Shown here one piece after another: positions 14,433-34,011 of a DNA stretch of 64,000 bases. The stretch covers positions 62,001 to 126,000 of the IMG/VR virus record IMGVR_UViG_3300032236_000747; one strand, 5' to 3'. Position numbers and translations under genes: made by a program. The notes beneath the pieces were generated by a model, which was not told the origin of the DNA, did no database searches, and saw only the letters and a program-made list of their open reading frames with translations. How positions within the stretch are numbered: position 1 is the first letter of the stretch; every line of letters begins with the position of its first letter.

Positions 14433-17102
14433 ATGAGTTACGTAGATGCAATCTGGGATCGTGACAACGATCTCGTCAAAGTAGTAGAACGTGATCCTAA
14501 AAAGGGTCGCATATATACAGATTTTCCAGCTAGATATGTTTTTTACTATCCAGACCCTAAAGGAAAATATCATTCAATCCACGGCGAAAGCCTGTCAAGA
14601 GTTGTTTGTAAGAACAACAAAGAATTCCAAAAAGAACTAAGAATACACAGCGGTGTTCGTTTATTTGAAAGCGACATCAAACCTGTGTTCCGATGTCTGG
14701 AAGAAAACTATCTAGGTAAAGATGCTCCAAAACTAAATGTAGCATTTTTCGATATTGAAGTGGACTTTGATCCCGAAAGAGGTTACGCAAGTCCAGACGA
14801 TCCATTTATGCCTATTACCGCTATCGCTGTTTACCTACAGTGGATGGAAACTATGGTATGTCTAGCAATGCCCCCAAAGACAATGACTATGGAACAGGCG
14901 CAAGAAGCAGTCAAAGAGTTTCCTAATACATATTTGTTTACCAGTGAAGCAGAAATGTTAGATACCTTTTTAAATCTTCTAGATGATGCCGATGTTATCA
15001 GTGGTTGGAACTCAGAAGGCTTCGACGTTCCGTATACCGTTAACCGTGTTACCAAGGTTCTAAGTAAAGAAGATACTCGTAGGTTCTGTTTGTGGAATCA
15101 AATGCCAAAGAAACGCGAATATGAGAAGTTCGGAAAACAAGCAGAAACATATGACTTTGTTGGACGAGTACACGTTGACAGTCTAGAGCTATATCGAAAG
15201 TACACATACGAAGAACGACACAGTTACAGACTCGATGCTATTGCCGAATACGAGCTAGGCGAACATAAGACACAATACGAAGGCACACTTGATCAGTTAT
15301 ACAACAACGACTTCCGTAAGTTTATTGAATATAACAGACAAGACTGTATGCTATTAGATAAACTAGATAAGAAGTTAAAGTTCATTGACCTTGCTTCAAC
15401 TGTTGCTCACGAAAACACAGTATTAATACAAACTACAATGGGTGCTGTAGCCGTTACAGAACAAGCTATTATTAATGAAGCACATCATAGAGGGTTTATT
15501 GTTCCTTCTAGAAAGAATCGTGATGATTTAACTGACACACAAGCTGCAGGGGCATATGTTGCTTACCCAAAGAAAGGCCTACATGACTGGGTTGGCTCGC
15601 TAGATATCAACTCATTGTATCCAAGTGTTATTCGTGCACTAAACATGGGTCCAGAAACTATCATAGGACAGTTACGTCAAGACTATACCAAGGCTGAGAT
15701 TGATGCTAAGATGGCAAAAGGTTCTTCATTTGCCGCAGCATGGGAAGGTAAGTTCGGTAGTAACGAATATGAGTTTGTTATGTCTAAGGATATTGCCAAT
15801 GATATCATCATCGACTGGGAAGGCGGCCAAACTGACGTACTAAGCGGCGCTCAGATCTACGATGTGATCTTCGAAAGCAACCAACCTTGGATGTTAAGTG
15901 CTAACGGAACTATCTTTACCTATGAAAAAGAAGGCATCATTCCTGGATTACTAAAGCGTTGGTATAGTGAGCGCAAGGAAATGCAGGCCAAACTCAAAGA
16001 AGCAATCAAAGCGGAGAATAAAATTGAAGAAGAATACTGGGACAAAAGACAACTCGTCAAGAAAATTAACCTTAATAGCCTTTATGGTGCTATTCTTAAC
16101 GCTGGGTGCCGCTTCTTCGATAATCGTATCGGACAGTCAACAACCCTCACAGGTAGACGTATTGCTCGCCATATGGCCGCAAAAGTAAATGAAGTAATCA
16201 CAGGAGATTATAATCACATAGGCAAAGCTATTATCTATGGAGATACTGACTCAGCATACTTCACCGCTTACACAAGTCTACGCAAAGAAATCGAAAAGAA
16301 GGAAATCCCTTGGAACAAGGAAAGTGTCATACAGTTATATGATTCTATAGCAGACGAAGTTAACAGCACATTCCCGCAACTAATGTTAAGTGATTTTCAT
16401 TGTCCTAAGAGTCGTGGCGAAGTTATCAAAGCAGGTCGTGAAATTGTAGGCAGTAAGGCATTGTTTATTACTAAGAAACGATATGCTGTACTATTCTATG
16501 ACAAGGAAGGTAAGCGTAAAGACAAAGATGGTAAGCCAGGTGAAATCAAAGCCATGGGACTAGATTTGAAACGCAGTGATACTCCTGAGTTTATGCAGAA
16601 CTTCTTAAGCGAAATCCTAAATAAAGTCTTAACAGGTAGTGAAGAAGCAGAGATCCTAGATATGATCAGCGAATTCCGCACAGAGTTTAAGAATAGGCCA
16701 GGCTGGGAAAAGGGTAGTCCAAAGCGTGCTAATAACATTGCAGAGTATCAATCTAAGGAAGCCAAGCAAGGTAAGGCTAATATGCCCGGACACGTTCGTG
16801 CTAGTATTAACTGGAATACACTCAAGCGTATGAACAATGACAAATACAGTCAACAGATTGTAGACGGTATGAAAGTTATTGTTTGTAAGATGAAAGATAA
16901 TCCACTTGGATATACTAGTATCGCTTATCCAGTAGACGAAATGCGTTTGCCACAATGGTTCAAGGATCTACCGTTTGATCATATGGAAATGGAAGCTACT
17001 ATTATTAACAACAAGGTCGAAAACCTTATCGGTGTACTAGAATGGGATTTATCTTCTACTACACAAAACAATACATTCGGAAGTTTATTCAGTTTTGAAT
17101 AA
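14433..17102 (+). CDS. polB: Family B DNA polymerase (T4 gp43-like)
   Basis: ExoI FFDIEVD, ExoII GWNSEGFDVPY, ExoIII YNRQD; Pol A SLDINSLYPS, Pol B KINLNSLYG, Pol C YGDTDS, and KKRYA. Confidence 0.96.
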   Translation: MSYVDAIWDRDNDLVKVVERDPKKGRIYTDFPARYVFYYPDPKGKYHSIHGESLSRVVCKNNKEFQKELRIHSGVRLFESDIKPVFRCLEENYLGKDAPKLNVAFFDIEVDFDPERGYASPDDPFMPITAIAVYLQWMETMVCLAMPPKTMTMEQAQEAVKEFPNTYLFTSEAEMLDTFLNLLDDADVISGWNSEGFDVPYTVNRVTKVLSKEDTRRFCLWNQMPKKREYEKFGKQAETYDFVGRVHVDSLELYRKYTYEERHSYRLDAIAEYELGEHKTQYEGTLDQLYNNDFRKFIEYNRQDCMLLDKLDKKLKFIDLASTVAHENTVLIQTTMGAVAVTEQAIINEAHHRGFIVPSRKNRDDLTDTQAAGAYVAYPKKGLHDWVGSLDINSLYPSVIRALNMGPETIIGQLRQDYTKAEIDAKMAKGSSFAAAWEGKFGSNEYEFVMSKDIANDIIIDWEGGQTDVLSGAQIYDVIFESNQPWMLSANGTIFTYEKEGIIPGLLKRWYSERKEMQAKLKEAIKAENKIEEEYWDKRQLVKKINLNSLYGAILNAGCRFFDNRIGQSTTLTGRRIARHMAAKVNEVITGDYNHIGKAIIYGDTDSAYFTAYTSLRKEIEKKEIPWNKESVIQLYDSIADEVNSTFPQLMLSDFHCPKSRGEVIKAGREIVGSKALFITKKRYAVLFYDKEGKRKDKDGKPGEIKAMGLDLKRSDTPEFMQNFLSEILNKVLTGSEEAEILDMISEFRTEFKNRPGWEKGSPKRANNIAEYQSKEAKQGKANMPGHVRASINWNTLKRMNNDKYSQQIVDGMKVIVCKMKDNPLGYTSIAYPVDEMRLPQWFKDLPFDHMEMEATIINNKVENLIGVLEWDLSSTTQNNTFGSLFSFE

Positions 17103-17156: not shown

Positions 17157-17891
17157 ATGCAGGACTTATTAAAGGATATCGTTGGACATACACAAAATCT
17201 AGGATTTTTAAATATCGTTAAGATTTCAGGTACAACTAAAGGAATCAATATTGATTCAATGGCTGATGACAGATCAGTTATTATGATGGCCGAAACAGCC
17301 AAGCCATACGAGGATATGCAAGGTGTATTTGGTATGCCTCAACTTAACAAGCTCAAGTTCTTGTTAGAGTGTTCTGAATATAAAGAAAATGCTAAGATTG
17401 AAGTTGTCAGTGCTGAAAGAAATGGTGAAGTTTTACCAGTAGGTTTACACTTTGAAAATGCAGGCGGCGACTTTAAGAATGATTATCGTTTTATGAATAC
17501 AGAAGTCATTAACGAGAAACTTAAAACAGTTAAGTTTAAAGGTGTTACATGGCACGTAGAAGTTGACCCAAGCCTACAAGCGATTCAGCGTTTTGCTTTA
17601 CAGGCAGCGGCTAACAATGAACACACAACATTCTTAGCAAAGACTGATGGTTCTAATCTTAAGTTTATCTTTGGAGATCAAGCAAGCCATGGTGGTGAAT
17701 TTATTTTTGCTACTAATGTAACAGGTAGCCTAAATAAAGCATGGACTTGGCCAGTTGCCAGTGTATTAGGTATCTTAAAAATTGCTGATGTAGGTAATGC
17801 CAAAGTTAGTTTTAGTAATGACGGCGCTATGCAAGTTACATTAGACACGGGCATTGCTGTTTACAAATATATTATTCCAGCACAAGCATGA
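17157..17891 (+). CDS. Sliding clamp (T4 gp45-like)
   Basis: 244 aa directly downstream of polB; alternating alpha/beta two-domain pattern ending in YKYIIPA, typical of phage clamps. Confidence 0.7.
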   Translation: MQDLLKDIVGHTQNLGFLNIVKISGTTKGINIDSMADDRSVIMMAETAKPYEDMQGVFGMPQLNKLKFLLECSEYKENAKIEVVSAERNGEVLPVGLHFENAGGDFKNDYRFMNTEVINEKLKTVKFKGVTWHVEVDPSLQAIQRFALQAAANNEHTTFLAKTDGSNLKFIFGDQASHGGEFIFATNVTGSLNKAWTWPVASVLGILKIADVGNAKVSFSNDGAMQVTLDTGIAVYKYIIPAQA

Positions 17892-18274
17892 TAAAAGGCA
17901 TAATGGGCGCTAGGGGTGTTAACGTATTGGGCGGTAACACTAGCCTTCAATATGTTAACCAAAACTCTAGTAACCCAATGCAGGGCATGGTACGTGTTTG
18001 GGGTAATGACTTGCAAGTATTTGATGGTAGCGGTTGGCAAAATATTGCTTCAAGCTATGCTACCGTTGAACTTGATTATGAAACTCAACAACTGTTAAAC
18101 TGGGCAAGGAACAAGAAACTTGAAGAAGAAGCATTACTGACATTGCCCACAGATCATCCTGCAATCAAATCTGCTAAACAAAACCTAAATAATGCCAAAG
18201 CAGAAGTAAGCCGCTTAGAAGAACAATTAAAAATAACAGAGATACTAACCAAAGATGAAGAGACCACCAGTTAA
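17888..18274 (+). CDS. Hypothetical protein with a C-terminal coiled coil
   Basis: 128-aa coupled ORF. Confidence 0.55.
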   Translation: MIKGIMGARGVNVLGGNTSLQYVNQNSSNPMQGMVRVWGNDLQVFDGSGWQNIASSYATVELDYETQQLLNWARNKKLEEEALLTLPTDHPAIKSAKQNLNNAKAEVSRLEEQLKITEILTKDEETTS

Positions 18275-19799
18275 CCTAACACCATTACAAAAGGACTACG
18301 CTGTATATCTACCAGCTATTAGTAGTTTCTACAGCACATACGTTGCCAAGCAACGACTAGAAGAGTTTGTACCTAAAACACGTATTCCGCAAGGATTTGA
18401 TCGTGGCATTGAAGGTATGAACTTCCTTAATCCAGAAGAAGGATACTTCTATTACAAATATGGTCTATACTCTGCGGGTCACGCACAGTTAGACTTACAA
18501 AAGAGTATGACACAGGAATCGATGATCCAACAACGTGATCGCGGGAATACTATGATTTTGGGAGATTCCGGTGGATACCAAATTGGTAAGGGCGTTTTAA
18601 AGTTTGATTGGTTAGACTTTGAAGGGGCTTCGGCAAACGCAACTCGTCAAAAGATTCTCGAGTGGTTAGAACTAACCGCTGACTGGTCTATGATGTTAGA
18701 CGTTCCTACTTGGGCCTGTGATCATATTCATAGTCCGAAGACTGGTCTTAAAACTGTCGAAGACTGTTTAGAAAAGACACGCTTTAATAACAAGTACTTC
18801 TTAGATAATAGATTAGGTCAAACTAAGTGGCTTAATGTTTTACAAGGATGGGATTGGGAATCAGCAGAGAACTGGTACCAAGGTGTAAAAGAATTTAGCG
18901 ATCCTAATGGTCCTTACGCAGGCAGAGAAGCCGAAGGGTGGGCATTCGGTGGTGCTAATATGTGTAAAATGGATATTACTCTCAAGCGTCTAATGACTCT
19001 TAGAGAAGATGGTTTGCTAAAGGGCAAAAACTGGATCCACTTCTTGGGTACAGCACAGTTAGATTGGTCATGCTATCTAACTTCAATTCAAAGACAAATC
19101 AGGAAACACATTAATGAAGAACTTACCATATCTTTTGACTGCGCCTCACCGTTTATCGCAACAGCACACGGACTTGTCTACACAAACGCACAACACACGC
19201 CAAAAAGGTGGAGCGTTATTATGGACAAAGCCTTTGACAACAAAGCTCTCGCAGGATCAGATATTCCATTCCCGTTTGAAAGCGAAGTGGGACGTCGCCT
19301 AACTGTTGGTGATATTTGTCATTATGCTCCAGGCATGTTAAACAAGATCAAGAAAGAAGGCAAGACTTCTTGGGATAGTTTTGCCTATGCATTAATGATG
19401 GGTCATAATGTCTACTGTCACATTGTTGCTGTACAGCGTGCTCAACACTTGATGGATATCGAAGTTGCCAGACATAAACCAGATTGGAGACTTTGGGGCC
19501 TAGAGGGCAAGAAAGAAAAAGAACTCAGTGATTGGGTTCCACGTAAGATTTTGTACTTTAACAGATTTGTTGAAGAACTATTTGATACTAAAACCAAAGA
19601 CGAAGCGTTTGCTATGATCGATGCTGCCAGAGATAATGGTTTCCTACGCAGTCTAGAAGGCGCACGTCTACAAGGCGGTAATGCTCAAAACAAGTTTAAT
19701 AGCTTATTTGACGTTGAAGAGACAGCATCCGCAGACGACATCGATTTAGAAAATCCAGAAGATGATGATCTACGTGCTTTGGAAGATTCTTTAACTTGA
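18255..19799 (+). CDS. dpdA: tRNA-guanine transglycosylase-fold protein, probable DNA 7-deazaguanine transglycosylase (DpdA-like)
   Basis: TGT catalytic motifs: ILGDSGGYQIG, MMLDVP, NVLQG, WAFGG, WIHFLG, ISFDCASP and a late HN. It clusters with queD-, folE- and queE-like genes. Confidence 0.78.
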   Translation: MKRPPVNLTPLQKDYAVYLPAISSFYSTYVAKQRLEEFVPKTRIPQGFDRGIEGMNFLNPEEGYFYYKYGLYSAGHAQLDLQKSMTQESMIQQRDRGNTMILGDSGGYQIGKGVLKFDWLDFEGASANATRQKILEWLELTADWSMMLDVPTWACDHIHSPKTGLKTVEDCLEKTRFNNKYFLDNRLGQTKWLNVLQGWDWESAENWYQGVKEFSDPNGPYAGREAEGWAFGGANMCKMDITLKRLMTLREDGLLKGKNWIHFLGTAQLDWSCYLTSIQRQIRKHINEELTISFDCASPFIATAHGLVYTNAQHTPKRWSVIMDKAFDNKALAGSDIPFPFESEVGRRLTVGDICHYAPGMLNKIKKEGKTSWDSFAYALMMGHNVYCHIVAVQRAQHLMDIEVARHKPDWRLWGLEGKKEKELSDWVPRKILYFNRFVEELFDTKTKDEAFAMIDAARDNGFLRSLEGARLQGGNAQNKFNSLFDVEETASADDIDLENPEDDDLRALEDSLT

Positions 19800-19824
19800 C
19801 ATAATATATGTAAATTGTTATAAT
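19796..19824 (+). promoter_or_regulatory. Perfect sigma70 consensus promoter
   Basis: TTGACA-17 nt-TATAAT. Confidence 0.85.
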
Positions 19825-19829
19825 AGTAC

Positions 19830-19994
19830 ATGAAGTATTTTAGAACATGGTGTAGAGAAAAGTGGTTTGAACATAAAGACGAATTAGAATCTTATGGTCA
19901 ACCACTGCCTTACACCGCTGAAGAATATTTCAAAAAATATAAGTTTTGGTTAAAAAGAGAGTTTCTGTTTCAAAGGAAAAATAATGAATCGTGA
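19830..19994 (+). CDS. Small hypothetical protein (54 aa, not in the ORF track)
   Basis: MKYFRTWCREKWFEHKDELESYGQPLPYTAEEYFKKYKFWLKREFLFQRKNNES; fills the gap directly behind the consensus promoter. Confidence 0.55.
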   Translation: MKYFRTWCREKWFEHKDELESYGQPLPYTAEEYFKKYKFWLKREFLFQRKNNES

Positions 19995-20508
19995 TTATAC
20001 TAGCGGAGAATCAGAAAATGCTATTTTCTTTTTCGGTAATGAAGTAGAGCACACTCCCGCATTTGGTATGGATACCTTGTTTGTTACCGGTGTACAAACA
20101 GTAGATGATATCGCTTTTCATTTATCAGGTACTACATATCAAACTAAACATATTTTCTTTGGAGCTAATCATAGCTTTAATCCTCAAAGTCCTCAAGAAT
20201 GGGATAGTTGGGAAAAAATGATTACATATTTCTTAGATAAAGATTACATATGTAGTTTAGATATTCCATTAAGCGCAGTAGAAGAGTTTAATGATGGCGG
20301 ATTAAACGATTACGACAACTTTATTCCGCAAATAAGAGTTCCAGTTCCATATATTAAACTATGGAACTATAACACGATGCTTAAGATCGATGACAAAGAT
20401 TTTAAAGCAACGAACCCCGGCGTGTGGTGTCATAGCCTACACGATTTAAAAGACCGTAGTAAGTTTACTCCTTGGAGTGCTTACGCAAATGATTTAATAT
20501 TGAAATGA
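19984..20508 (+). CDS. Conserved-looking hypothetical protein in the deazaguanine cluster
   Basis: 174 aa, alpha/beta pattern, coupled to the queD-like gene. Confidence 0.6.
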   Translation: MNRDYTSGESENAIFFFGNEVEHTPAFGMDTLFVTGVQTVDDIAFHLSGTTYQTKHIFFGANHSFNPQSPQEWDSWEKMITYFLDKDYICSLDIPLSAVEEFNDGGLNDYDNFIPQIRVPVPYIKLWNYNTMLKIDDKDFKATNPGVWCHSLHDLKDRSKFTPWSAYANDLILK

Positions 20509-20903
20509 ATCAAAAAACAACAATGAGGCAAGACTGGCGACCCCTTAAAATGATTTGGGTTACCTTTCAAAAAGAAGGCATTCACAAATACCCTGCAGCA
20601 CTTACTGATCCTTCATTAAAAACAAATGACGAATACGATGTTAGCTTTTTAGGTTACCCGCATCGTCATACATTCCATTTTAAAGTTTGGATTGCTGTTA
20701 CACACAACGATAGAGATATCGAGTTTATTCAGTTTAAACGCTGGTTGGAAAAACTTTATACAGGTGCACTTCAACTAGACTATAAGAGTTGCGAGATGAT
20801 GTCAGATGAGTTGTATGACGCTATCTCTAGCAGGTATCCAGATCGAGAGATTTGGATTGAGATCTCCGAAGACGGAGAAAATGGTTCACTAATCAAATAT
20901 TAA
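20505..20903 (+). CDS. queD: QueD-like T-fold protein (6-carboxytetrahydropterin synthase family)
   Basis: GYPHRHTFHFKVWI (HxH Zn ligands), DIEFIQFKRWL and KSCEMMS (equivalent of TxEN), plus the gene context. Confidence 0.7.
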   Translation: MNQKTTMRQDWRPLKMIWVTFQKEGIHKYPAALTDPSLKTNDEYDVSFLGYPHRHTFHFKVWIAVTHNDRDIEFIQFKRWLEKLYTGALQLDYKSCEMMSDELYDAISSRYPDREIWIEISEDGENGSLIKY

Positions 20904-20915
20904 GGAAAAACAATA

Positions 20916-21137
20916 ATGGCACAGCCAGCATATATCCAAAAAACTCTTAAAATGAAACCAGAGGTAACAAAGATTTTTGATGACCTCGATGCATGGTTAG
21001 ACCATTGCCGGTTTAACTTACTTCCTTTTAATCCTGCTGATATGTACCGTTCTGCAGACTATCGCAACTTCCAACGTGAGCAAGAATATCTTGAACGTAA
21101 AGCACGTCGCGAGCACAAGGCACGCCAAGGCTATTAA
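20916..21137 (+). CDS. Small hypothetical protein
   Basis: 73 aa with an AAGGA Shine-Dalgarno. Confidence 0.55.
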   Translation: MAQPAYIQKTLKMKPEVTKIFDDLDAWLDHCRFNLLPFNPADMYRSADYRNFQREQEYLERKARREHKARQGY

Positions 21138-22241
21138 ATGGCAAATATCTTTCTAGTTGATTTAGAAAGTGTAGAAACAAGGTACACGGGTCAATGGAAG
21201 ACCCATGTACCTGCTCTTCTTTCAAAGGCAGGACACAATGTTCAAGTTTTATCTGGGCCTGAGGATATTCCTTCAGCCACTACTCCTGGTGCTTTTCTTA
21301 ATTTTGGTGGCACCAATATATACAAGGCTCGACAAGTTGAGCAGATGGGCCGTTTATTTTGTAACGGATCCGTTAAGCCCGGCGATCACTTTATCTTTAC
21401 TGATGCTTGGCACCCTGGCATCATAAACTTAAAGTATATGAGTGAACTACTGAATATTCCAGTAGTTACACATGGCCTTTGGCATGCTGGCAGTTATGAT
21501 CCTCAAGACTTTCTTGGACGTCTTGTAGGAAATAAACCTTGGGTTCGTAAAGCAGAAGCAAGTTTTTATCATGCTTTTGATCACAACTACTTTGCTACAC
21601 AGTTTCATATGAAGTTGTTCTTTGACGAGTTGTTGTTAGGTGGGTTAAAAGAAGAAAATCCATGGTACGAAGATGATCTTGCTGAAATCCTAGGTGGATT
21701 AAATCCTAAGTTTGTATGGACAGGTTGGCCCATGGAATATATGGCCGAAACACTGGCTCCATTTAAAGGTGCACAGAAAAGAGATCTTATTGTGTTTCCG
21801 CATCGTATTGCTCCAGAGAAACAGGTTGAAATCTTTAGAGACCTTGCCACGCACATGCCACAGTTTGAGTTTGTTGTGTGTCAGGATCAACAACTAACCA
21901 AAGACGAATACCATACTTTACTAAGTGAAGCAAAGATTGTGTTTAGTTGTAGCCTACAAGAAACACTAGGCATTGGATGTTACGAAGGTGCGTTAGTTGA
22001 CACTATTCCGCTGGTTCCCGATCGTCTAAGCTATCATGAGATGTACTACGAGAACTTTAAGTATCCAAGCGAATGGACACTAGATTGGGATCATTATATC
22101 GAACATCGTCGAGAACTGTGTCATCACATTTCTCTTATGATGATGAACTATAATCAGTCGATTCCAAAAATAAGAGCACAGGCTGAGGGTTTGTCTAAAT
22201 ACTTCTTTACAGCACAGAACTTATTGGAGATGTTAAAATGA
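21138..22241 (+). CDS. GT-B fold glycosyltransferase (GT1/GT4-like)
   Basis: C-terminal IVFPHRIAPEKQVEIF and SLQETLGIGCYEGALVDTIPLV match the RxxxxK and ExFGxxxxE-like donor-binding motifs. Confidence 0.75.
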   Translation: MANIFLVDLESVETRYTGQWKTHVPALLSKAGHNVQVLSGPEDIPSATTPGAFLNFGGTNIYKARQVEQMGRLFCNGSVKPGDHFIFTDAWHPGIINLKYMSELLNIPVVTHGLWHAGSYDPQDFLGRLVGNKPWVRKAEASFYHAFDHNYFATQFHMKLFFDELLLGGLKEENPWYEDDLAEILGGLNPKFVWTGWPMEYMAETLAPFKGAQKRDLIVFPHRIAPEKQVEIFRDLATHMPQFEFVVCQDQQLTKDEYHTLLSEAKIVFSCSLQETLGIGCYEGALVDTIPLVPDRLSYHEMYYENFKYPSEWTLDWDHYIEHRRELCHHISLMMMNYNQSIPKIRAQAEGLSKYFFTAQNLLEMLK

Positions 22242-23041
22242 ACTGGGGAAGAGCAAAGATTGGTATTATAGGAATCGGATTTGTAGGCGGAGCAATACGA
22301 GATGCAATGGATGGTGTTTGTGAGTTAGTACTTGTGGATCAAGATCCCACTCGCGGATCACATACATATAGAGATTTAAAAGACTGCGAAGCTATCTTTG
22401 TATGTGTACCTAGTCCACAAGGCGAAGACGGTCGCTGTGATACTAGCATTTTAGAAAGTGTGCTAGAGTGTCTACAAGACTTTACTGGTGTTGTTATTAG
22501 TAAATGCACTGCTAGTCCAGAAGTTTACACACAACTAAACGAAAAGTATCCCAATCTAGTTCACGCCCCGGAGTTCCTGGTTGCCGCTACTGCCAGCAAG
22601 GATTATGCAAATGGTAAGTTTGCTTTTATCGGTGGTAAAGTTAAAGCATATAGAGACCAAGCTGTAGAAGTTATCAAGATCGGACAACCCGGTCTTGAAA
22701 TTATTCACCACTGCACTATTGCTGAAGCTGCTATGGCCAAATACACTATTAATACATTTCTTGCTACTAAGGTAGTTTGGATGAATGAGCTGCATCAGCT
22801 TTGTTCTAAAATGGGAATCGATTATAAAAAGGTAGTTGCTATGGCATCTGCCGATCGTCGAATTGGTAGCAGCCATTTGAGTGTACCAGGACCAGACGAG
22901 ACGTTTGGATTCGGTGGTGCGTGTTTCCCAAAAGATACAGCCGCATTACTTAAGATAGCAGAAGATTATGATTCTCAAATGAATGTGTTAGATTCTGCTG
23001 TTAAGAAAAATACAATACTGAGGTTGACGGAGCCTAAATAA
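22238..23041 (+). CDS. UDP-glucose/GDP-mannose dehydrogenase family protein lacking the C-terminal domain
   Basis: Rossmann IGIIGIGFVG, FVCVPSP, ISKCT, PEFL, MAKYTINTFLATK and catalytic GFGGACFPKD; only 267 aa. Confidence 0.85.
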   Translation: MNWGRAKIGIIGIGFVGGAIRDAMDGVCELVLVDQDPTRGSHTYRDLKDCEAIFVCVPSPQGEDGRCDTSILESVLECLQDFTGVVISKCTASPEVYTQLNEKYPNLVHAPEFLVAATASKDYANGKFAFIGGKVKAYRDQAVEVIKIGQPGLEIIHHCTIAEAAMAKYTINTFLATKVVWMNELHQLCSKMGIDYKKVVAMASADRRIGSSHLSVPGPDETFGFGGACFPKDTAALLKIAEDYDSQMNVLDSAVKKNTILRLTEPK

Positions 23042-23086
23042 AAGTGTACTATTAGTACACAGGTCATCCTCGACCTTAACTCGGAG
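23035..23086 (+). promoter_or_regulatory. folE leader: TAAATA, two perfect hairpins and a GGAG Shine-Dalgarno
   Basis: GTGTACT-ATT-AGTACAC (23044-23060) and AGGTC-ATCCTC-GACCT (23061-23076), then GGAG 8 nt before the TTG start. Confidence 0.55.
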
Positions 23087-23094
23087 AATAATAA

Positions 23095-23841
23095 TTGACA
23101 GATAAGAAAGAAACAGCACTAGACGCTATAGCAGGCGATGGTGGCTACCAAGAAGGTACAATGCACAACTATTTGGGCTTTGTAATGAAACGTAACGGTA
23201 AAAGATTCTGGGCCGGAGACAACATCAGTGACTACGTTGATGAAGAGAAAAAAGCACAACTAATCAACGAAGCAACAGAAGCATTTGAAAAAGTCTTAGA
23301 TTGTTTGCTTATTGATCGCGAAAACGATCCTAATAGTAAAGGTACAGCACGCCGCCTTGCTAAAATGTATTTTAATGAAATAATGTCAGGACGTTATGAA
23401 CCGGCACCAGATGCAACAGCATTTCCCAACGACAGCGAAGACAGATACGAAGGTATGCTGGTGGTACGTAGTGAGTTGCGCTCTATGTGCAGTCATCATC
23501 ATCAGCCCGTTAGCGGTGTCGCTTACATTGGCATCATCGCCGCACAAAAACTTATTGGTTTGTCTAAGTATACTCGTATTGCTCAGTGGTGTGCTCGTCG
23601 CGGCACTCTCCAGGAAGAGTTGTGTAACGATATTGCTAGGGAAATAAGCAAAGCAACTGATTCAGAAAACGTAGCAGTATACATTCAAGCTACACATGGA
23701 TGCTGTGAAAATCGCGGCATTATGGCACATAGCTCATTAACTCAAACTACAGTACTACGAGGTTCTTTTAACACAGACCCTGCTACTAAGAAAGAGTTCT
23801 TTGATAACATTAAACTTCAACAAGAGTTTGCTCCGCGATGA
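23095..23841 (+). CDS. folE: GTP cyclohydrolase I
   Basis: GTARRLAKMY, SMCSHHHQP, GLSKYTRI, LQEEL and HGCCENRG are the FolE Zn and substrate motifs. Confidence 0.93.
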   Translation: MTDKKETALDAIAGDGGYQEGTMHNYLGFVMKRNGKRFWAGDNISDYVDEEKKAQLINEATEAFEKVLDCLLIDRENDPNSKGTARRLAKMYFNEIMSGRYEPAPDATAFPNDSEDRYEGMLVVRSELRSMCSHHHQPVSGVAYIGIIAAQKLIGLSKYTRIAQWCARRGTLQEELCNDIAREISKATDSENVAVYIQATHGCCENRGIMAHSSLTQTTVLRGSFNTDPATKKEFFDNIKLQQEFAPR

Positions 23842-23963
23842 TTTATATTACTAACAAGTATGATAGTATAAGAGTACCTTATTCTAAGGACTTGTTAGAA
23901 TGGCTACAACAAACTTATCCACTTTCTCAATATCAAGTAAAGGAACTGCATCATGGCAACTAA
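23838..23963 (+). CDS. Small hypothetical protein (41 aa, not in the ORF track)
   Basis: ATGA-coupled to folE; MIYITNKYDSIRVPYSKDLLEWLQQTYPLSQYQVKELHHGN fills the gap. Confidence 0.4.
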   Translation: MIYITNKYDSIRVPYSKDLLEWLQQTYPLSQYQVKELHHGN

Positions 23964-25062
23964 AGAAGAAAAAGAGAAACTCATTGAACTTTTAAAGTTT
24001 ACTCCACGCACCTACAAAATCACCATGTGGGGTTATGGAGGTGAAAAAGTCATGGGAACAGTAGATCGTAAAATCTACGATTATTTTAAACATCGTAGAC
24101 TAGACCTAAGTGAATACGCCTGGGGTTATGAGTATGCTGACGAAAATAATATTCCAGAAGATATGCAGCCATTTCCAGCAGGTAGTTGGTATGAATGCGA
24201 TAACATAGGGCACGTAAATGGTGTAAGTCGTAACGCAGGTACACTGCAGATCGATGACGAAAACGGCGATACTGTATACGAAAAATCGTTTGACGATATT
24301 AGCGGAGGTGACGAGGGCGAACCAGAATGGGATTGTGGTGACGAAATCTGGATTGATGAACAACCAGCAGGTACTGTAGTATTCGTAGGAAACAGTAACG
24401 AAAAGGGTACCTTCTTTGAAGGTGAAATCAACCTCACTTCTCCTTTTGATATTACTAAGTTAACACTAAGCTACGAAGAAGTAGACGGTGAAGAAATTGT
24501 TAATGGCGTATCATACGACGGCGAGGACATTGACAACTTCGGCGGTAACACAGATGGTAAGAGCAGCGACTTTGGCTTTTATATTTCTCACTCACAAAAA
24601 GAAACAGGAAACTGGGAAAAATACCGAAACATGGATGACATCGATTATCCAATGACTGCCTGGTTTCCTAAAAAGATTAATCCTGTTCGTGAAGGCAACT
24701 ACATGGTTAAAACAGCAGGTAAGAACAGCTATACATATCAAGCCAAGTGGACCGGAGAAAAATGGACTAACTCATGGAGCGATGACGAAGTTAAAATCAA
24801 AGAATGGCAAGGACTTGCCATTGATCCAGATCTAGAAGAAGCCCCAACTCCTCCAGAAATGTCTCCTGAAGAATTAATATTGGCTCTCGAAGAGCTAGAT
24901 AAAGCACTCGAAGAGCTTTCGTTAGAAATAGAAAAAGTTCCTTGCCTTAGCTGCGGCGAAGAATATTCAGAACATATGTTATTCGAAATGGATGGACAAT
25001 ATGTTTGTCCTAGTTGCGGTGAGGGATGGGTTATGCTAGATAACCGAGAAGAGTTAAAATGA
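23953..25062 (+). CDS. Acidic hypothetical protein with a C-terminal Zn ribbon
   Basis: CLSCG-x-CPSCG at the C-terminus; strongly D/E-rich. Confidence 0.65.
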   Translation: MATKEEKEKLIELLKFTPRTYKITMWGYGGEKVMGTVDRKIYDYFKHRRLDLSEYAWGYEYADENNIPEDMQPFPAGSWYECDNIGHVNGVSRNAGTLQIDDENGDTVYEKSFDDISGGDEGEPEWDCGDEIWIDEQPAGTVVFVGNSNEKGTFFEGEINLTSPFDITKLTLSYEEVDGEEIVNGVSYDGEDIDNFGGNTDGKSSDFGFYISHSQKETGNWEKYRNMDDIDYPMTAWFPKKINPVREGNYMVKTAGKNSYTYQAKWTGEKWTNSWSDDEVKIKEWQGLAIDPDLEEAPTPPEMSPEELILALEELDKALEELSLEIEKVPCLSCGEEYSEHMLFEMDGQYVCPSCGEGWVMLDNREELK

Positions 25063-25289
25063 GTACCGCAAAAGATATATTTGATACTACCTGGGAAAAA
25101 ATCAAACGCTTAGAACGGTTTGAGATTAAACGTGAAGTTGAAAAGGGGTGGTTGCCAAGAGGACACATACCTTTCGATATTAGTGTTAAACAATGCGTTG
25201 CTACTTTTATTGTATATGCAGAGTTTTTACAAGACGCAGAAGACCAAGTTACAACTTACTTAGAAAGCATGGATGAAGACAATGATTAA
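25059..25289 (+). CDS. Hypothetical protein
   Basis: 76-aa coupled ORF. Confidence 0.5.
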   Translation: MSTAKDIFDTTWEKIKRLERFEIKREVEKGWLPRGHIPFDISVKQCVATFIVYAEFLQDAEDQVTTYLESMDEDND

Positions 25290-25746
25290 ATTTTTACAAT
25301 GGTTAGAAAAACATGGTCGTAAACGCATTGTTATGGATCGTCAAGCAAATGAGCCATACCTTGAACGCTACTATATCTTTCTAAAAGATCGTAAACGTTT
25401 TCCATTTAACATATTCTTGCATAAGTTTTTAAAAGGTGATCCTGACGATGTTCACGATCATCCATGGCCTTATGCTACATTAATCCTTAAAGGCGGATAC
25501 TACGAGTGGATCCCAACATTTAATCCTCACACCAAGGAGAAGGTAGGAGAGACACGTTACTGGAGAGGACCGGGTCATTTCCGTATTTGTAAACCAACAA
25601 GTTATCATCGCATTGAACTAGCAGAGGGTGTAACAGCATGGACTCTGTTTATGCCCGGTCCACAAGTTCGTGAATGGGGATTCTTGGTTAAAAATAAATG
25701 GATACAGCACGAAGAATATATTGAAAGTAAAAAACAACATGGATAA
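25273..25746 (+). CDS. Cupin-fold metalloprotein
   Basis: DVHDHPWPYATLILKGGYYE ... SYHRIEL ... WTLFMPGP match the two cupin motifs (HxH...E...H). Confidence 0.7.
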   Translation: MKTMIKFLQWLEKHGRKRIVMDRQANEPYLERYYIFLKDRKRFPFNIFLHKFLKGDPDDVHDHPWPYATLILKGGYYEWIPTFNPHTKEKVGETRYWRGPGHFRICKPTSYHRIELAEGVTAWTLFMPGPQVREWGFLVKNKWIQHEEYIESKKQHG

Positions 25747-26011
25747 TAAAACAAAAGAAGTAATGGATATCCTGCAAGAAGAATGCGCAGAGGTTATTCA
25801 AGCAGTAAGTAAGATTAGCAGATTTGGTATAGATAACATTAAACCAGGTAAACCTAAAACTAATCGTCAACACCTAGAAGAAGAACTAGGTGATATGCTA
25901 GCAATGATTGACATCATGCTAGAAAAGAATGTAATATCATTAGAACACTTAGAAGTTGCTAAGGCTGCTAAGATTGAAAAACTAAAACAATGGTCAAACA
26001 TTTATGAGTAA
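25739..26011 (+). CDS. mazG: MazG-like nucleotide pyrophosphohydrolase
   Basis: LQEECAEVIQAVSK ... LEEELGDMLAMI shows the ExxE...ExxD pattern. Start at ATG 25739. Confidence 0.75.
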   Translation: MDNKTKEVMDILQEECAEVIQAVSKISRFGIDNIKPGKPKTNRQHLEEELGDMLAMIDIMLEKNVISLEHLEVAKAAKIEKLKQWSNIYE

Positions 26012-26858
26012 AATTAAAGTAGCAGAACTATTTTACAGCATACAAGGTGAAGGAAGGTATATGGGTGTACCTTCTGTTTTCTTACGTACCTTCGGCTGTA
26101 ACTTTAAATGCGAAGGCTTTGGAATGCCTAGAGGACAAAAAAGTGAAGAATACATCAACATCAATCCCGATCTCTACCCAACTTATAAACACCTTCCACT
26201 TGTTAGTACTGGCTGCGACTCTTACGCTAGTTGGGATGCTAGGTTTCGTCATCTTAGTCCTCTTTTGGAGTCTGACGCAATTGCCGATCAAATTATGGAA
26301 ATACTTCCACACAAAGAATGGCGAGACGAACACCTAGTTATTACAGGCGGTGAACCTTTACTAGGATGGCAAAAGGCTTATCCAGATTTGTTAGAACATC
26401 CCAAAATGGGAGGTTTGCGTGAAATTACTTTCGAGACAAATGGTTCTATGCGTCTAACTACAGCATTTAAGGAATACTTAAAAGACTGGACATCTAGAGG
26501 AAACGATGGCTTGTGGACTAGAGAAATTACGTTTAGTGTAAGTGCTAAACTTCCAGTAAGCGGCGAGCCATGGGCCGATGCTATCAAGCCAGCAGTAGTA
26601 TGCGATTACCAAAATTACGGCACAGTATATTTGAAGTTTGTCATTACCAATGAAGAGGATTTAAAAGATGCAGAACGTGCAGTTGAAGAATACAAGGCTG
26701 CTGGATTCCGAGGTCATGTTTATCTCATGCCTGTTGGCGGTGTTGAGTCTGTTTACGCTCTCAACAATAGAAATGTGGCGGACATCGCAATGCGTAAAGG
26801 CTGGAGGTATTCAGACCGACTTCAAGTGCCACTATTTAAAAACGAATGGGGAACTTAA
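26004..26858 (+). CDS. queE: 7-carboxy-7-deazaguanine synthase (radical SAM)
   Basis: ELFYSIQGEG, VFLRTFGC, CDS, VITGGEPLL, FETNG, SVSAKL, LKFVI, YLMP and RLQV. Confidence 0.9.
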   Translation: MSKIKVAELFYSIQGEGRYMGVPSVFLRTFGCNFKCEGFGMPRGQKSEEYININPDLYPTYKHLPLVSTGCDSYASWDARFRHLSPLLESDAIADQIMEILPHKEWRDEHLVITGGEPLLGWQKAYPDLLEHPKMGGLREITFETNGSMRLTTAFKEYLKDWTSRGNDGLWTREITFSVSAKLPVSGEPWADAIKPAVVCDYQNYGTVYLKFVITNEEDLKDAERAVEEYKAAGFRGHVYLMPVGGVESVYALNNRNVADIAMRKGWRYSDRLQVPLFKNEWGT

Positions 26859-27253
26859 TGATATTTGATAGATTGTTTGAGATTGTAAACTCAATAAAAC
26901 AAAAATGGAAGAACAGACGAGAAGCTAAAAAATATGCTCAAACAAACGAATCTACTAGATTGAGCAAAGAAGAAGCTACTGCTAAAAAGAAACCATGGGT
27001 AGCTGTTTTAGACACACACGTTAATCCAGAAAACATCCGTAATGGGTTTTTTGAACTAGACTGGAATGAGTTTTTTATTCTAGAACTAACGGCTGCAGGA
27101 TACGTAGGAAAAAATGAAGAAGAAATTGTCGATGCTTGGTTCACAGAACTCTGTAACAATCTCGGCCAAGAAGCAAACATCAACATGAACAATAGAGGTT
27201 CAGGTTATGTTAATCGTGCGTTGAGAGACGACGGAAGAACTGAGATAAGTTAA
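26858..27253 (+). CDS. Hypothetical phage protein
   Basis: TAATG-coupled ORF containing GFFELDWNEFF. Confidence 0.6.
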   Translation: MIFDRLFEIVNSIKQKWKNRREAKKYAQTNESTRLSKEEATAKKKPWVAVLDTHVNPENIRNGFFELDWNEFFILELTAAGYVGKNEEEIVDAWFTELCNNLGQEANINMNNRGSGYVNRALRDDGRTEIS

Positions 27254-27909
27254 TGATAAATTTTTTAAGAGAAATAACAAGCCGTGGCCTTACTATTGAT
27301 ACAGTGTATGACGTAGGTGCATGGAGAGGCGATTGGTCCAGAGTAGTTCGAGGTTCTGTATTACCCGACAGCGAGTTTGTTGTATTTGAAGCAAATCCTG
27401 CTTATAAACACGATCTTGAAAACTCAGGTTTTAAGAATTTTAACGTTGTTTTATCAAACCCAGGTAGAGAATATGTAGATTTCTATAACGGAACTAATAC
27501 CGGAGATAGTTACTACAAAGAAACTACACACGTTTACGATAATCAAGGCACAATACGTTTACCTTGTACCACAATCGACAAACTTGTAGAAGAGCATAAC
27601 TTGCCAATTCCTAACTTTATCAAGTTAGATACACAGGGCAGCGAGCTAGATATTCTAGATGGAGCCAAAAGTATCATAGATAAAGTGGATTTGATCTATA
27701 CAGAACTACCATTTGTGTGTTATAATAAGGGTGCGCCGGGTTTACAAGACTACATCGAGTACTTCAAAGCACGCAAGTTTGTTCCTATGAGAATATGCGA
27801 AGTACATCATGCTGATAGCATCCTTATCCAAATGGATATTATGTTTATGAAGCACGAAACCAAAGTAAGATTGTTAGGCCCAGAAACACAAATCAGACCA
27901 TTTGAGTAA
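27253..27909 (+). CDS. FkbM-family SAM-dependent methyltransferase
   Basis: VYDVGAWRGDW, VFEANP, TIDKL and FIKLDTQGSELDILDG. Confidence 0.85.
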   Translation: MINFLREITSRGLTIDTVYDVGAWRGDWSRVVRGSVLPDSEFVVFEANPAYKHDLENSGFKNFNVVLSNPGREYVDFYNGTNTGDSYYKETTHVYDNQGTIRLPCTTIDKLVEEHNLPIPNFIKLDTQGSELDILDGAKSIIDKVDLIYTELPFVCYNKGAPGLQDYIEYFKARKFVPMRICEVHHADSILIQMDIMFMKHETKVRLLGPETQIRPFE

Positions 27910-27910
27910 T

Positions 27911-31473: not shown

Positions 31474-31474
31474 A

Positions 31475-31496
31475 CAAAGGCCCTTCGGGGCCTTTG
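31475..31496 (+). terminator. Intrinsic terminator-like hairpin with a UUCG tetraloop
   Basis: CAAAGGCCC-TTCG-GGGCCTTTG immediately after the ATPase stop codon. Confidence 0.8.
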
Positions 31497-31500
31497 TAAC

Positions 31501-31529
31501 TTGATTTTGTCAGTATTTGAGTGTATAAT
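31501..31529 (+). promoter_or_regulatory. Sigma70-type promoter
   Basis: TTGATT-17 nt-TATAAT followed by an AAGGAG Shine-Dalgarno. Confidence 0.75.
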
Positions 31530-31552
31530 AATGTATTGTTTAAGGAGTACGC

Positions 31553-33349: not shown

Positions 33350-33931
33350 ATGAAACACGTTGGCAAAATGAAAAACAACTCAGCCAGAGTTGCTGTCGCC
33401 TACAGAACACTACCAGGAGATCCTCATAGTGCATTAGTCGTAGGTGTACAAGGATTAGGTGATAGCTATCACGATTTCCTAATGACTGTTATCGAAAGCG
33501 AACCCGCGCAACAGGCAAATGAGCTTGCAGAAGTTTTAGCCACACGTCGATTCGCAGACGGAACCGTTATGTTAAGTTATCTACACCTTAACGGTCACTT
33601 GAAGAAAGTAGCTACCAATGCTGTGCTAATGACTCCAGACAGTCACACAGCTATCCAACTAGATCAACTAAATGAAATCATTGCTACACAGAAAGGTGTA
33701 TCAATCGAGGATCTAGCTGTAAATGATGGCACACCTCAAGACAAGACTGCTAAGAAGCCACAGCCAAAGGAAGAAGTTGTAGTACCAACTGGAACAACTC
33801 CTATGACTGCTTCCGAACTTCGTAGCAAAGCAGATGCTTTATATAAAGAAGCTGCTAAACTTCGCAAGGAGGCCGATGAACTCGATCCGCCTAAAAGTAA
33901 AACAAAAAAGGTGGCTGCTGAGGCTGAATGA
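33350..33931 (+). CDS. Hypothetical protein
   Basis: 193-aa ORF with an AAGGAG Shine-Dalgarno. Confidence 0.65.
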   Translation: MKHVGKMKNNSARVAVAYRTLPGDPHSALVVGVQGLGDSYHDFLMTVIESEPAQQANELAEVLATRRFADGTVMLSYLHLNGHLKKVATNAVLMTPDSHTAIQLDQLNEIIATQKGVSIEDLAVNDGTPQDKTAKKPQPKEEVVVPTGTTPMTASELRSKADALYKEAAKLRKEADELDPPKSKTKKVAAEAE

Positions 33932-34011
33932 TTGGTTTCATAGTTGAAACTGTAAAAGGCATGGGCCGCAAGGTCATGCCTTTTATTATCCCTGAAGAAT
34001 ATAAAAAAGTT

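Follow-up and report, generated by a model that had tools for sequence, protein, structure and literature searches.

A sugar-transferring enzyme is locked into the gene set for 7-deazaguanine DNA modification in at least six phage lineages, so these phages may make a sugar-bearing purine, a kind of DNA base not yet described. The genes were examined in a 64,000-nucleotide stretch (hereafter the window; positions 62,001 to 126,000 of IMG/VR record IMGVR_UViG_3300032236_000747) from an uncultured jumbo phage with a contig of about 355 kb. The original prediction had listed a dpdA-like TGT, queD-like, folE and queE genes with a GT-B glycosyltransferase (GT), an NDP-sugar dehydrogenase, a cupin, MazG and an FkbM methyltransferase, and every one of these genes proved to be present, on the + strand between 18255 and 27909. 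Its reading, that the sugar enzymes decorate the deazaguanine, was only partly supported. The module, embedded in a T4-like replication gene block, and its surroundings comprise:

14433..17102 (+), T4-type family B DNA polymerase, the upstream boundary of the conserved module
17157..17891 (+), sliding-clamp-like protein
18255..19799 (+), DpdA-type guanine transglycosylase of the TGT superfamily, a divergent 514-aa form
19796..19824 (+), sigma-70-type promoter match
19984..20508 (+), g174, conserved protein of unknown function
20505..20903 (+), DpdL, a QueD/PTPS paralogue
20916..21137 (+), g73, small conserved ORF between DpdL and the GT
21138..22241 (+), GT4-like GT-B glycosyltransferase, predicted retaining type
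22238..23041 (+), two-domain UDP-glucose-dehydrogenase-like oxidoreductase
23095..23841 (+), GTP cyclohydrolase I (FolE), probable start the ATG at 23161
23953..25062 (+), g369, accessory protein of unknown function
25273..25746 (+), cupin-fold, cysteine-dioxygenase-like protein, possible oxygenase
25670..26011 (+), MazG-type nucleoside triphosphate pyrophosphohydrolase, probable start the ATG at 25739
26004..26858 (+), QueE-like radical SAM enzyme (CDG synthase)
26846..27253 (+), g135, conserved protein of unknown function between QueE and the exonuclease
27253..27909 (+), FkbM-family methyltransferase, an accessory gene specific to this genome
27902..28897 (+), 5'-3' exonuclease / RNase H, the downstream boundary of the module
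33928..34899 (+), thymidylate synthase (ThyA)

The 514-aa protein returned no Pfam, PHROG, NCBIfam or PDB sequence hit, but its AlphaFold model (pLDDT 92.5) folds as a tRNA-guanine transglycosylase. The 35 best PDB fold matches in a Foldseek search were all tRNA-guanine transglycosylases (best E 6.7e-7), and matches in BFVD included phage TGT/DpdA-like proteins. The family, with 902 representatives at 50% clustering, keeps GDSGGFQ in its consensus, and D104-S-G-G, D149, H262/G265 and D295 were invariant across 56 diverse homologues. FolE was identified by Pfam (1.6e-40) and PHROG (2.5e-46), with CSHHH and HGC zinc-site motifs. QueE was supported by PHROG 2076 (1.5e-51) and an N-terminal ELFYSIQGEG signature, while five QueE NCBIfam models hit below their cut-offs. 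The clustering is not chance, as the same arrangement recurs in 80 related IMG/VR loci and in several distant phages.

Two assignments required correction. The queD-like gene has a PTPS/QueD fold (a PTPS-like fold in the Atlas), but carries the DpdL motif LxxxHRHxF defined by Cui et al. 2023 (L49-x3-H53-R-H55-x-F57; LGYPHRHTF) and not the QueD motif CxxxHGH. It is homologous to phiST gp040, which is DpdL (E 6e-9), and H27, H53, H55, H67, E73, E97 and E122 are invariant. DpdL is therefore the correct name, and the predicted base is 7-deazaguanine (DG), not a CDG- or preQ0-type base. No true QueD or QueC lies in the window. The dehydrogenase is a two-domain form of 267 aa, its start overlapping the GT stop. 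Pfam detected the UDPG_MGDP_dh central domain (PF00984, 2.3e-25) and the N (NAD) domain (PF03721, 1.8e-10), and the GIGFVGG and GFGGACFPKD motifs and catalytic cysteine are kept. The C-terminal UDP-binding domain is missing, with TIGR03026 covering only model positions 67-294 of 413.

The glycosyltransferase model (pLDDT 83.7) matched GT4/GT5 retaining GT-B enzymes, including glycogen synthase (1.2e-8), BshA (2e-7), tetrahydrobiopterin glucosyltransferase (2.5e-7), MshA and PglA. Its EX7E motif (E275-E283) is conserved out to ACP17 and BUDD.

Co-occurrence of the GT family with DpdL was investigated next. Among 50,697 phage records, 22 have the GT family and 28 have DpdL; 17 have both, always within 4 kb, where about 0.01 would be expected if the two were independent. 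The six independent lineages are the window's clade, PA5oct-like phages, Phosso, ACP17, BUDD/X1 and BCSR5. In the window's clade, 44 of 44 informative loci have a GT-family gene a median 240 bp after DpdL. All 4 additional BUDD-like metagenomic GT loci also have DpdL within 2.5 kb. The GT tracks DpdL rather than DpdA: Vibrio phage 2.275.O has the same DpdA family with a preQ1-type gene set, including QueF, and has neither DpdL nor the GT, while BUDD and BCSR5 pair the GT and DpdL with a different DpdA subfamily.

The slot beside the GT holds different sugar-tailoring enzymes in different lineages (L-numbers denote individual loci in the comparison). The two-domain dehydrogenase occupies it in 8 loci including the window, and an SDR NDP-sugar epimerase/dehydratase in L068 (1e-43). 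L065 and L068 carry divergent Glycos_transf_1-like GTs in that place, and PA5oct-like phages a short SDR domain. BUDD, BCSR5 and L092 have PIG-L-like deacetylases, and in L093 and L094 the PIG-L-like domain is fused to DpdL.

These data support a 7-deazaguanine DNA-modification cluster to which the glycosyltransferase belongs functionally, rather than being a chance insertion. In the proposed pathway, FolE converts GTP to H2NTP, a step established for the family, and a QueD activity, which may be encoded elsewhere in the genome or supplied by the host, is inferred to make CPH4. QueE makes 7-carboxy-7-deazaguanine (CDG), and DpdL would remove the carboxyl group to give DG, as proposed by Cui et al. 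2023 without biochemical demonstration. The DpdA-type enzyme would then swap DG for G in phage DNA after replication, as inferred from fold and context. We hypothesize that the GT transfers a sugar from an NDP-sugar onto the deazaguanine, either on DNA after insertion or on the free base before it, yielding a sugar-bearing DG that would shield DNA from restriction. The gene content and the coupling of the GT to DpdL are observed, whereas attachment of the sugar to deazaguanine in DNA is inferred from comparative evidence alone, without chemical data for any GT-bearing phage. We consider this explanation plausible but unproven, and only somewhat more likely than not.

Published data bear on this possibility. 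phiST has DpdL without the GT, and plain dDG replaces all of its G. PA5oct has adjacent DpdA-like, GT and DpdL genes, and its DNA, inferred to carry an unidentified modified G, resists G-containing restriction sites. It is also targeted by a nuclease that hit only the phages with modified G in that panel, not those modified on T or C. A chemical precedent exists in HuiG, a GT that glycosylates a free 7-deazapurine base in huimycin biosynthesis. However, DG has no hydroxyl group, leaving C7, C8, N2 or O6 as possible acceptor atoms, and GT4 enzymes normally make O-glycosides.

The DNA may alternatively contain plain 2'-deoxy-7-deazaguanosine, as in phiST, with the GT and its neighbours acting on host envelope glycans, a protein or a metabolite and sharing the cluster only as early anti-defence or host-takeover genes. 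The nearest solved folds of the GT act on small molecules or glycans, and T4 beta-glucosyltransferase is not among its top 50 fold matches. A distant member of the GT family (PhiXhv, Ep026) sits with GlmS and a deacetylase, with no deazaguanine genes nearby. The slot next to the GT also receives unrelated insertions, a subtilase in L065 and a sulfate permease in L022. Co-location with DpdL at under 4 kb in six lineages that share little else is nevertheless hard to explain by neutral linkage, as are persistence across different DpdA subfamilies and the PIG-L-DpdL fusion. The GT is soluble, and lies in a replication and nucleotide-metabolism block of virulent phages rather than in a seroconversion cassette. 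We regard this alternative as unlikely.

Less likely still, the GT may glycosylate a free heterocycle that is not incorporated into DNA, either a 7-deazapurine base, as in huimycin and dapiramicin, or a pterin derived from FolE and the PTPS-like protein, as with cyanobacterial tetrahydrobiopterin glucosyltransferase, or it may target a queuosine-like base in tRNA. The tetrahydrobiopterin glucosyltransferase 5zer is the sixth-best fold match, and HuiG is a precedent for a GT acting on a free deazapurine. Cui et al. predicted that DpdL acts on the free base, and its fusion to a deacetylase would fit chemistry at the small-molecule level. Against this, a DpdA-type transglycosylase and QueE always accompany the pair, DpdL lacks the catalytic cysteine needed for PTPS/QueD chemistry, PA5oct DNA appears modified at G, and no tRNA genes lie in the window. 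Glycosylation of the free base followed by DpdA insertion would still yield a sugar-bearing base in DNA, as in our main hypothesis.

Decoration of a modified pyrimidine (5hmC, 5hoC or 5hmU) made by genes outside the window, as in T-even phages, RB69 and DLP3, with the GT's position being coincidental, appears very unlikely. All DNA glycosyltransferases known so far act on hydroxylated pyrimidines, and only 18% of the genome was visible. However, no dCMP hydroxymethylase or 5hoC synthase was seen in the window. Its ThyA (Pfam 4e-106) is a genuine dUMP methylase, retaining the equivalents of L143, C146, D169 and N177 in an alignment to solved ThyA, judged by the criteria of PMC13326640; the original prediction was right that the dUMP-specific Asn is kept. 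The nuclease sensitivity of PA5oct, which has the same GT beside its DpdA-like gene, and the tracking of DpdL by the GT across lineages also argue against this reading.

The sugar appears to differ between lineages. In the BUDD/BCSR5-like group, a BshA/BshB-like pairing of the GT with a PIG-L deacetylase suggests GlcNAc converted to GlcN. In the window, the dehydrogenase may oxidise the attached sugar and FkbM may methylate it, in line with the uronic or methylated sugar originally predicted, but both roles are weakly supported and are the weakest parts of the model. The dehydrogenase is in only 7 of the 80 related loci, and a protein of the same architecture sits next to QueE in Campylobacter Firehammervirus phages with no GT nearby, making its sugar role doubtful. 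All 8 copies are 262-270 aa, and seven end in the same conserved ...LRL(T/Q)EPK (L044 stops at ...LRLT). FkbM (Pfam 1.2e-17 and TIGR01444 2.1e-20, both above cut-off) is absent from all 80 related loci, with only one weak hit among the 50,697 phage records. The cupin (PHROG 4786, 1.6e-37; Atlas structural neighbours are cupins, TM about 0.6) is present in 28 related loci, and MazG was identified by Pfam (1.5e-6) and PHROG 4856 (2.5e-23). MazG-like and cupin-domain genes, with no detectable homology to those of the window, also accompany the plain-dDG cluster of phiST, where a MazG flanks DpdL, so they do not point to sugar chemistry.

A perfect sigma-70-type promoter match (TTGACA, 17 nt with TG, TATAAT; 12 of 12) lies just upstream of the g54-g174-DpdL-GT genes, although this is a lead only, as the region as a whole shows no excess of promoter-like sites. 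At the module boundaries, the polymerase (PHROG 262, E 7e-200) is syntenic in PA5oct-like phages, Phosso and Vibrio phage 2.275.O, and the exonuclease (Pfam 2.4e-19, PHROG 107) in PAC2 and Phosso, where homologues of the clamp-like protein (PHROG 12062) are annotated PCNA or sliding clamp. g369, which has a zinc-ribbon-like C-terminal end, gave only weak DUF7564 and Zn-ribbon hits and is present in only 2-3 related loci. g174, always between DpdA and DpdL, was found in 71 related loci and next to DpdA in ACP17 (E about 1e-42), with no family or Atlas assignment. g73 is present in 58 related loci with no family hit, and g135 (PHROG 13349) has syntenic homologues in PAC2 and Phosso.

Every substantial ORF between 18255 and 27909 lies on the + strand. 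The flanking replication genes, the DpdA-like protein, the glycosyltransferase and the nearby thymidylate synthase are as follows.

14433-17102: T4-type family B DNA polymerase, followed by a clamp-like gene, preceding the block
18255-19799 (+): 514-aa DpdA-like protein
21138-22241 (+): GT-B glycosyltransferase (GT)
27902-28897: 5'-3' exonuclease/RNase H, ending the block
33928-34899: ThyA

The window is part of a 354,680-bp JGI metagenome contig (3300032236, Ga0335263_1128169) and is therefore a piece of an uncultured jumbo phage. A nucleotide search with the region found no match among 50,697 phage records. The observation of a 7-deazaguanine gene cluster containing sugar-related genes was confirmed, with two corrections: the gene described as queD-like is DpdL, the proposed CDG decarboxylase, and the gene described as an NDP-sugar dehydrogenase encodes a two-domain form.

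FolE, the FkbM methyltransferase, MazG and the N-terminal and central domains of a UDP-glucose/GDP-mannose dehydrogenase were secure by curated models. FolE scored 138.9 bits against a Pfam PF01227 cut-off of 27 (1.6e-40) and carries the CSHHH and HGC zinc-site motifs. The FkbM protein scored 65.1 bits against 22.7 for PF05050 (1.2e-17) and 73.6 bits against 37.7 for TIGR01444 (2.1e-20). The QueE-like protein matched PHROG 2076 ('QueE-like', 1.5e-51) and carries the N-terminal ELFYSIQGEG motif. Five QueE NCBIfam models hit it at 1e-11 to 1e-16 but below their cut-offs, its Pfam Radical_SAM score of 28.6 fell just below the cut-off of 29.5, and its cysteine spacing is atypical.

The 514-aa protein matched nothing in Pfam (including the TGT models PF01702 and PF20314), PHROGs, NCBIfam or a phmmer search of PDB sequences, and only structure prediction showed what it is. 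It belongs to a very large metagenomic family, with more than 6,600 close hits on contigs of up to about 380 kb and 902 representatives at 50% clustering. An alignment of 56 diverse members gave the consensus GDSGGFQ, with D104, S105, G107, D149, H262, G265 and D295 invariant; the window protein itself reads DSGGYQ at residues 104-109. A profile search against PDB was not significant (E about 1.3), although this weak alignment placed the motif in register with TGT residues 99-233. Which Asp acts as the nucleophile is inferred only. The AlphaFold model built on the alignment was confident (pLDDT 92.5) and has the (beta/alpha)8 TGT fold, and its 35 best PDB matches are all bacterial, archaeal or eukaryotic tRNA-guanine transglycosylases, with E down to 6.7e-7. 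In BFVD it matched phage proteins annotated as TGT, DpdA-like or queuine tRNA-ribosyltransferase. No CxCxxC pattern of the CxCxxC...H zinc site is present. The original assignment as a DpdA-like TGT is thus confirmed, but as a new, divergent subfamily that is not a member of DpdA1-4 by sequence. The DpdA of ACP17 is a distant relative (7.5e-8), whereas those of BUDD and BCSR5 were not detected.

The 132-aa protein first read as QueD-like is a QueD paralogue but not QueD. Cui et al. 2023 (PMC10516641) define DpdL, the proposed CDG decarboxylase yielding 7-deazaguanine (DG), by replacement of the QueD motif CxxxHGH with LxxxHRHxF. The window protein reads L49-G-Y-P-H53-R-H55-T-F57, with the catalytic Cys replaced by Leu, and L49, H53, H55 and F57 are invariant in 11 diverse homologues. 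A tblastn search matched phiST gp040 with E 6e-9 over 85% of the query, and the position of that gene matches CGPG_00067, the phiST DpdL. Neighbors in the Atlas carry PF01242 with a structural TM of about 0.8, while a profile search against PDB was not significant (E 0.53). DpdA, FolE and QueE-like genes are present alongside it, and no ORF in the 64-kb window has a CxxxHGH QueD motif or a QueC PP-loop.

The GT gave a good model (pLDDT 83.7) with a two-Rossmann GT-B fold. Of 98 PDB matches at E<=1e-3, all 50 listed are GT-B enzymes, mostly GT4/GT5, and the closest solved folds are the retaining enzymes archaeal glycogen synthase, BshA, tetrahydrobiopterin alpha-glucosyltransferase, GlgM, MshA and PglA. 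The EX7E motif (E275-x7-E283) is invariant, including in ACP17, PAC2, Phosso and BUDD, although Pfam models scored only below cut-off. Neither T4 beta-glucosyltransferase nor alpha-glucosyltransferase appeared among the 50 best fold matches, and there was no sequence hit in PDB. This does not exclude action on DNA, since other phage GT-B enzymes acting on 5hmC also resemble GT4 enzymes such as PglH.

The dehydrogenase-like protein (267 aa) has the NAD-binding (PF03721) and central (PF00984) domains with GIGFVGG and catalytic GFGGACFPKD motifs, but it stops before the C-terminal UDP-sugar-binding domain (PF03720) of the usual protein of about 390-440 aa. TIGR03026 was matched only over model positions 67-294 of 413, at 130.8 bits against a cut-off of 189.8. 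The possibility of a pseudogene or fragment was rejected, as all 8 copies are of about the same length (262-270 aa) and keep the active-site motif, and seven share the same conserved C-terminus. The same truncation was seen in all clade copies, in Firehammervirus IBB35 and in cyanophage C48C1. It should not be filed as a bona fide NDP-sugar dehydrogenase. The possibility of a dCMP hydroxymethylase or 5hodCMP synthase was also examined for the window ThyA. This protein keeps L, C, D and N at the positions diagnostic for those enzymes (N177D with L143D/E, or D169N, E. coli numbering), and is a normal thymidylate synthase.

We next fetched eighty IMG/VR loci of the same clade, in which the DpdA-like proteins are 66-87% identical to that of the window. 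The core order was polymerase, clamp, DpdA-like, g174 (a conserved protein for which an Atlas search gave nothing), DpdL, g73 (a small conserved ORF), GT, usually FolE, cupin, QueE, g135 (a conserved protein) and exonuclease. The dehydrogenase (7 loci), MazG and g369 (an accessory protein) were variable, and FkbM was found in no other locus. Every one of the 44 loci with enough sequence after DpdL has a GT-family gene, a median 240 bp downstream. A perfect 12-of-12 match to the sigma-70 consensus promoter with an extended -10 TG lies at 19796-19824 (+) of the window, ahead of the g54-g174-DpdL-GT genes. It overlaps the DpdA-like stop codon (its -35 hexamer starts at 19796 and the stop ends at 19799) and suggests early transcription by host RNA polymerase. 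The module accepts unrelated insertions in some relatives. Locus L022 (9108-12063) has a GFO/IDH-type oxidoreductase, a sulfate permease and an alcohol-dehydrogenase-like protein between DpdA and g174, and locus L065 (12643-14670) has a subtilase after the GT.

Outside the clade, the GT family occurs in 22 phage records and DpdL in 28. Seventeen records have both, always within 4 kb: the PA5oct-like phages, Phosso, ACP17, BUDD, X1 and BCSR5. A search for loci related to the ACP17 GT returned only ACP17 itself, but four further metagenomic relatives of the BUDD GT all carry DpdL, with FolE and/or QueE, next to it. The GT follows DpdL rather than DpdA. Vibrio phage 2.275.O has the same DpdA family with a preQ1-type gene set, including QueF, and has neither DpdL nor the GT, while BUDD and BCSR5 use another DpdA subfamily. 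Conversely, phiST, RHph_I1_18 and Ahp1 have DpdL without this GT nearby.

The position next to the GT is occupied by different sugar-tailoring enzymes in different lineages.

Table. Enzymes found next to the GT, by lineage or locus.
Window and 7 clade loci: two-domain dehydrogenase
Locus L068: SDR NDP-sugar epimerase/dehydratase (PF01370, 1e-43)
PA5oct-like phages: short SDR domain
BUDD, BCSR5 and locus L092: PIG-L/LmbE-like protein (motifs PHVDDExIGC and HxxH; Pfam PIG-L 4.7e-5 in BCSR5)
L093 and L094 (IMG/VR relatives of Xanthomonas phage BUDD): the same PIG-L-like domain fused to the N-terminus of DpdL

In L065 and L068 the GT itself is replaced by a divergent Glycos_transf_1-like enzyme. 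In L093 (6797-7591) and L094 (6746-7606) the fused PIG-L/LmbE-like domain is about 150 aa, and free-standing homologues lie next to the GT in BUDD, BCSR5 and L092. The fusion links sugar processing physically to the deazaguanine pathway, although the PIG-L assignment is below Pfam's cut-off (24.3 bits against 28.2). A remote member of the GT family in PhiXhv-type phages sits with GlmS and a BshB-like deacetylase. PAPS-reductase-like (ATP pyrophosphatase fold) proteins lie beside the PIG-L-like gene in BUDD and BCSR5 (L088:6377-6871 and L089:6137-6784), and may be QueC-like or another adenylating step.

These pairings recall BshA/BshB and MshA/MshB, in which a GT4 GlcNAc transferase is followed by a PIG-L/LmbE deacetylase in bacillithiol and mycothiol synthesis. 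The best-superposing solved structures of the GT include BshA (TM 0.61-0.63) and MshA. Together, the fold similarity and gene pairing suggest a GlcNAc-then-deacetylation logic in some lineages. However, sequence identity to BshA is about 10%, the window itself has no PIG-L homologue, and the acceptor here is not malate or inositol phosphate.

The dDG system of Cellulophaga phage phiST (DpdA3, DpdL, FolE, QueD, QueE, MazG; PMC10516641) shares with the window FolE, a QueE or QueE-like protein, DpdL with the LxxxHRHxF motif, a distant TGT-fold DpdA, a MazG and a position next to the DNA polymerase, and no QueC was found in either. phiST DNA contains plain dDG in place of all G. In contrast to the window, phiST has no GT, dehydrogenase or FkbM and encodes its own QueD in the cluster. 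Its DpdA3 is 259 aa and is not detectably similar to the 514-aa protein by BLAST or HMM. MazG and the cupin were rejected as sugar-pathway markers, since phiST has a MazG and a cupin-domain protein beside its plain-dDG cluster, though its cupin is not detectably homologous.

The module of Pseudomonas jumbo phage PA5oct (Wroclawvirus; END-nuclease preprint, PMC12191111) is syntenic with that of the window: polymerase, clamp, DpdA-like (44% identity), GT (41%), DpdL (56%), QueE and RNase H, with the DpdA-like, GT and DpdL genes adjacent. PA5oct has a short SDR domain and a phosphoribosyltransferase in place of the dehydrogenase, FolE, cupin and FkbM, and its DpdL motif variant is LGYPHFHYF. In the PA5oct-like phage PAC2 a phosphoribosyltransferase-domain protein (L001:15946-16380) lies between DpdL and QueE. 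This hints at a nucleotide-level route (base plus PRPP) in Wroclawviruses, in addition to base exchange by DpdA. The authors of the PA5oct work inferred a modified G without reporting its structure, and a nuclease that targeted only phages with modified G hits PA5oct. The identity of this base was not found in the literature searched, and the MIJ3 paper says nothing about DNA modification.

Sugar-bearing bases are known on hydroxylated pyrimidines, through T4 alpha/beta-glucosyltransferases on 5hmC, arabinosyl-5hoC in RB69 and DLP3, and metaviromic 5hmC glycans. As in the present module, a phage GT and lineage-specific NDP-sugar enzymes there cluster with base-modification genes near the replication genes, with glycodiversification between relatives. 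The acceptor in those systems is a hydroxyl on a pyrimidine made by a ThyA homologue or a TET-like enzyme. No such enzyme was seen in the window, and the partner pathway makes a purine analogue with no hydroxyl. In huimycin and dapiramicin biosynthesis, as in the window, a 7-deazaguanine-pathway core is combined with a glycosyltransferase and a SAM methyltransferase; there HuiG and HuiC act on a free 7-deazapurine base, giving a sugar-bearing deazapurine. These are actinomycete secondary metabolites built on preQ0, are not inserted into nucleic acid and have no DpdA. Mannosyl- and galactosyl-queuosine in eukaryotic tRNA also place a sugar on a 7-deazaguanine derivative within a nucleic acid, but on the cyclopentenediol hydroxyl of queuosine. 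The present cluster has no QueC, QueF or QueA-type genes, and the comparison with phiST and PA5oct points to DNA. Our literature search found no paper describing a sugar-bearing deazaguanine in DNA.

The proposal that the sugar enzymes decorate the deazaguanine is partly supported, being strengthened for the GT and weakened for the dehydrogenase and the methyltransferase. Our analyses establish that the cluster is a DpdL-type (dDG-type) deazaguanine DNA-modification module and that the GT is an integral, conserved partner of DpdL. That DpdA exchanges guanine in DNA for a 7-deazaguanine base, that the GT puts a sugar on the deazaguanine, and that this base ends up in DNA are all inferred. We regard a sugar-bearing deazaguanine in DNA as about as likely as not. 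As DG lacks a hydroxyl group, candidate acceptors are C7 or C8 of the pyrrole ring, N2 and O6, or a hydroxyl introduced by the cupin, and transfer could occur on the free base or on DNA.

The dehydrogenase is the weakest link in the original scheme. It cannot bind a UDP-sugar in the canonical way. A 257-aa protein of the same architecture (26% identity, end to end), keeping the catalytic Cys motif but lacking the UDP-binding domain, lies one small ORF after QueE in Campylobacter phage vB_CcoM-IBB_35 (Firehammervirus; L096:6878-7651), where no GT or DpdL was detected within 7 kb. DNA of phages of this CP220 group is reported to carry dADG. In cyanophage C48C1 a similar form sits next to an NDP-sugar epimerase. 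The protein could oxidise an attached sugar, or it could act on a deazaguanine side chain. FkbM is a genome-specific addition.

A more far-reaching hypothesis, which we consider slightly less likely than not, is that phages carrying the DpdL-GT pair (the abundant jumbo-phage clade of the window, PA5oct-like phages, ACP17, Phosso, BUDD/X1 and BCSR5) replace guanine with a glycosylated 7-deazaguanine. In this view, decarboxylation by DpdL would exist to free the electron-rich C7 (or C8) of the pyrrole ring for direct attachment of a sugar, for example as a C-glycoside. Alternatively, attachment would follow ring hydroxylation by the cupin. The sugar would be diversified between lineages into GlcN, a uronic acid or a methylated sugar. 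The product would be the first sugar-bearing purine analogue in DNA. All sugar-bearing DNA bases known so far are pyrimidines (glucosyl-5hmC, arabinosyl-5hoC, base J), and the eight described deazaguanines in DNA carry only small substituents. A glycosylated 7-deazaguanine would be a new chemical class of natural DNA base, with consequences for restriction, CRISPR evasion and type IV restriction sensing. It would explain the modified G of PA5oct, a therapeutic-candidate phage. It would also suggest why Cui et al. could not obtain dDG in E. coli from ACP17 DpdL plus DpdA, a result for which they noted that other enzymes may be needed. The same module is present in several cultured phages.

Beyond the module, the window encodes a 979-aa protein with a cytidylyltransferase-like (PF01467) domain at 6946-9885 (+). 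PA5oct-like phages also encode a CTP_transf-like protein upstream of the polymerase, and it could relate to nucleotide-sugar or NAD metabolism. A chaperone and protein-quality set at 885-4532 (+) comprises DnaJ (both domains), peptide deformylase and a ClpB-like double AAA+ ATPase. Just downstream of the modification module, at 30391-32815 (+), a MoxR-type AAA+ ATPase is followed by a DUF2201 metallopeptidase/VWA-like protein as a conserved pair. The window also encodes tail proteins, and its structural region on the minus strand contains a single 4,579-aa ORF (42990-56729, -) next to a 1,236-aa ORF and a tail-collar-domain protein.
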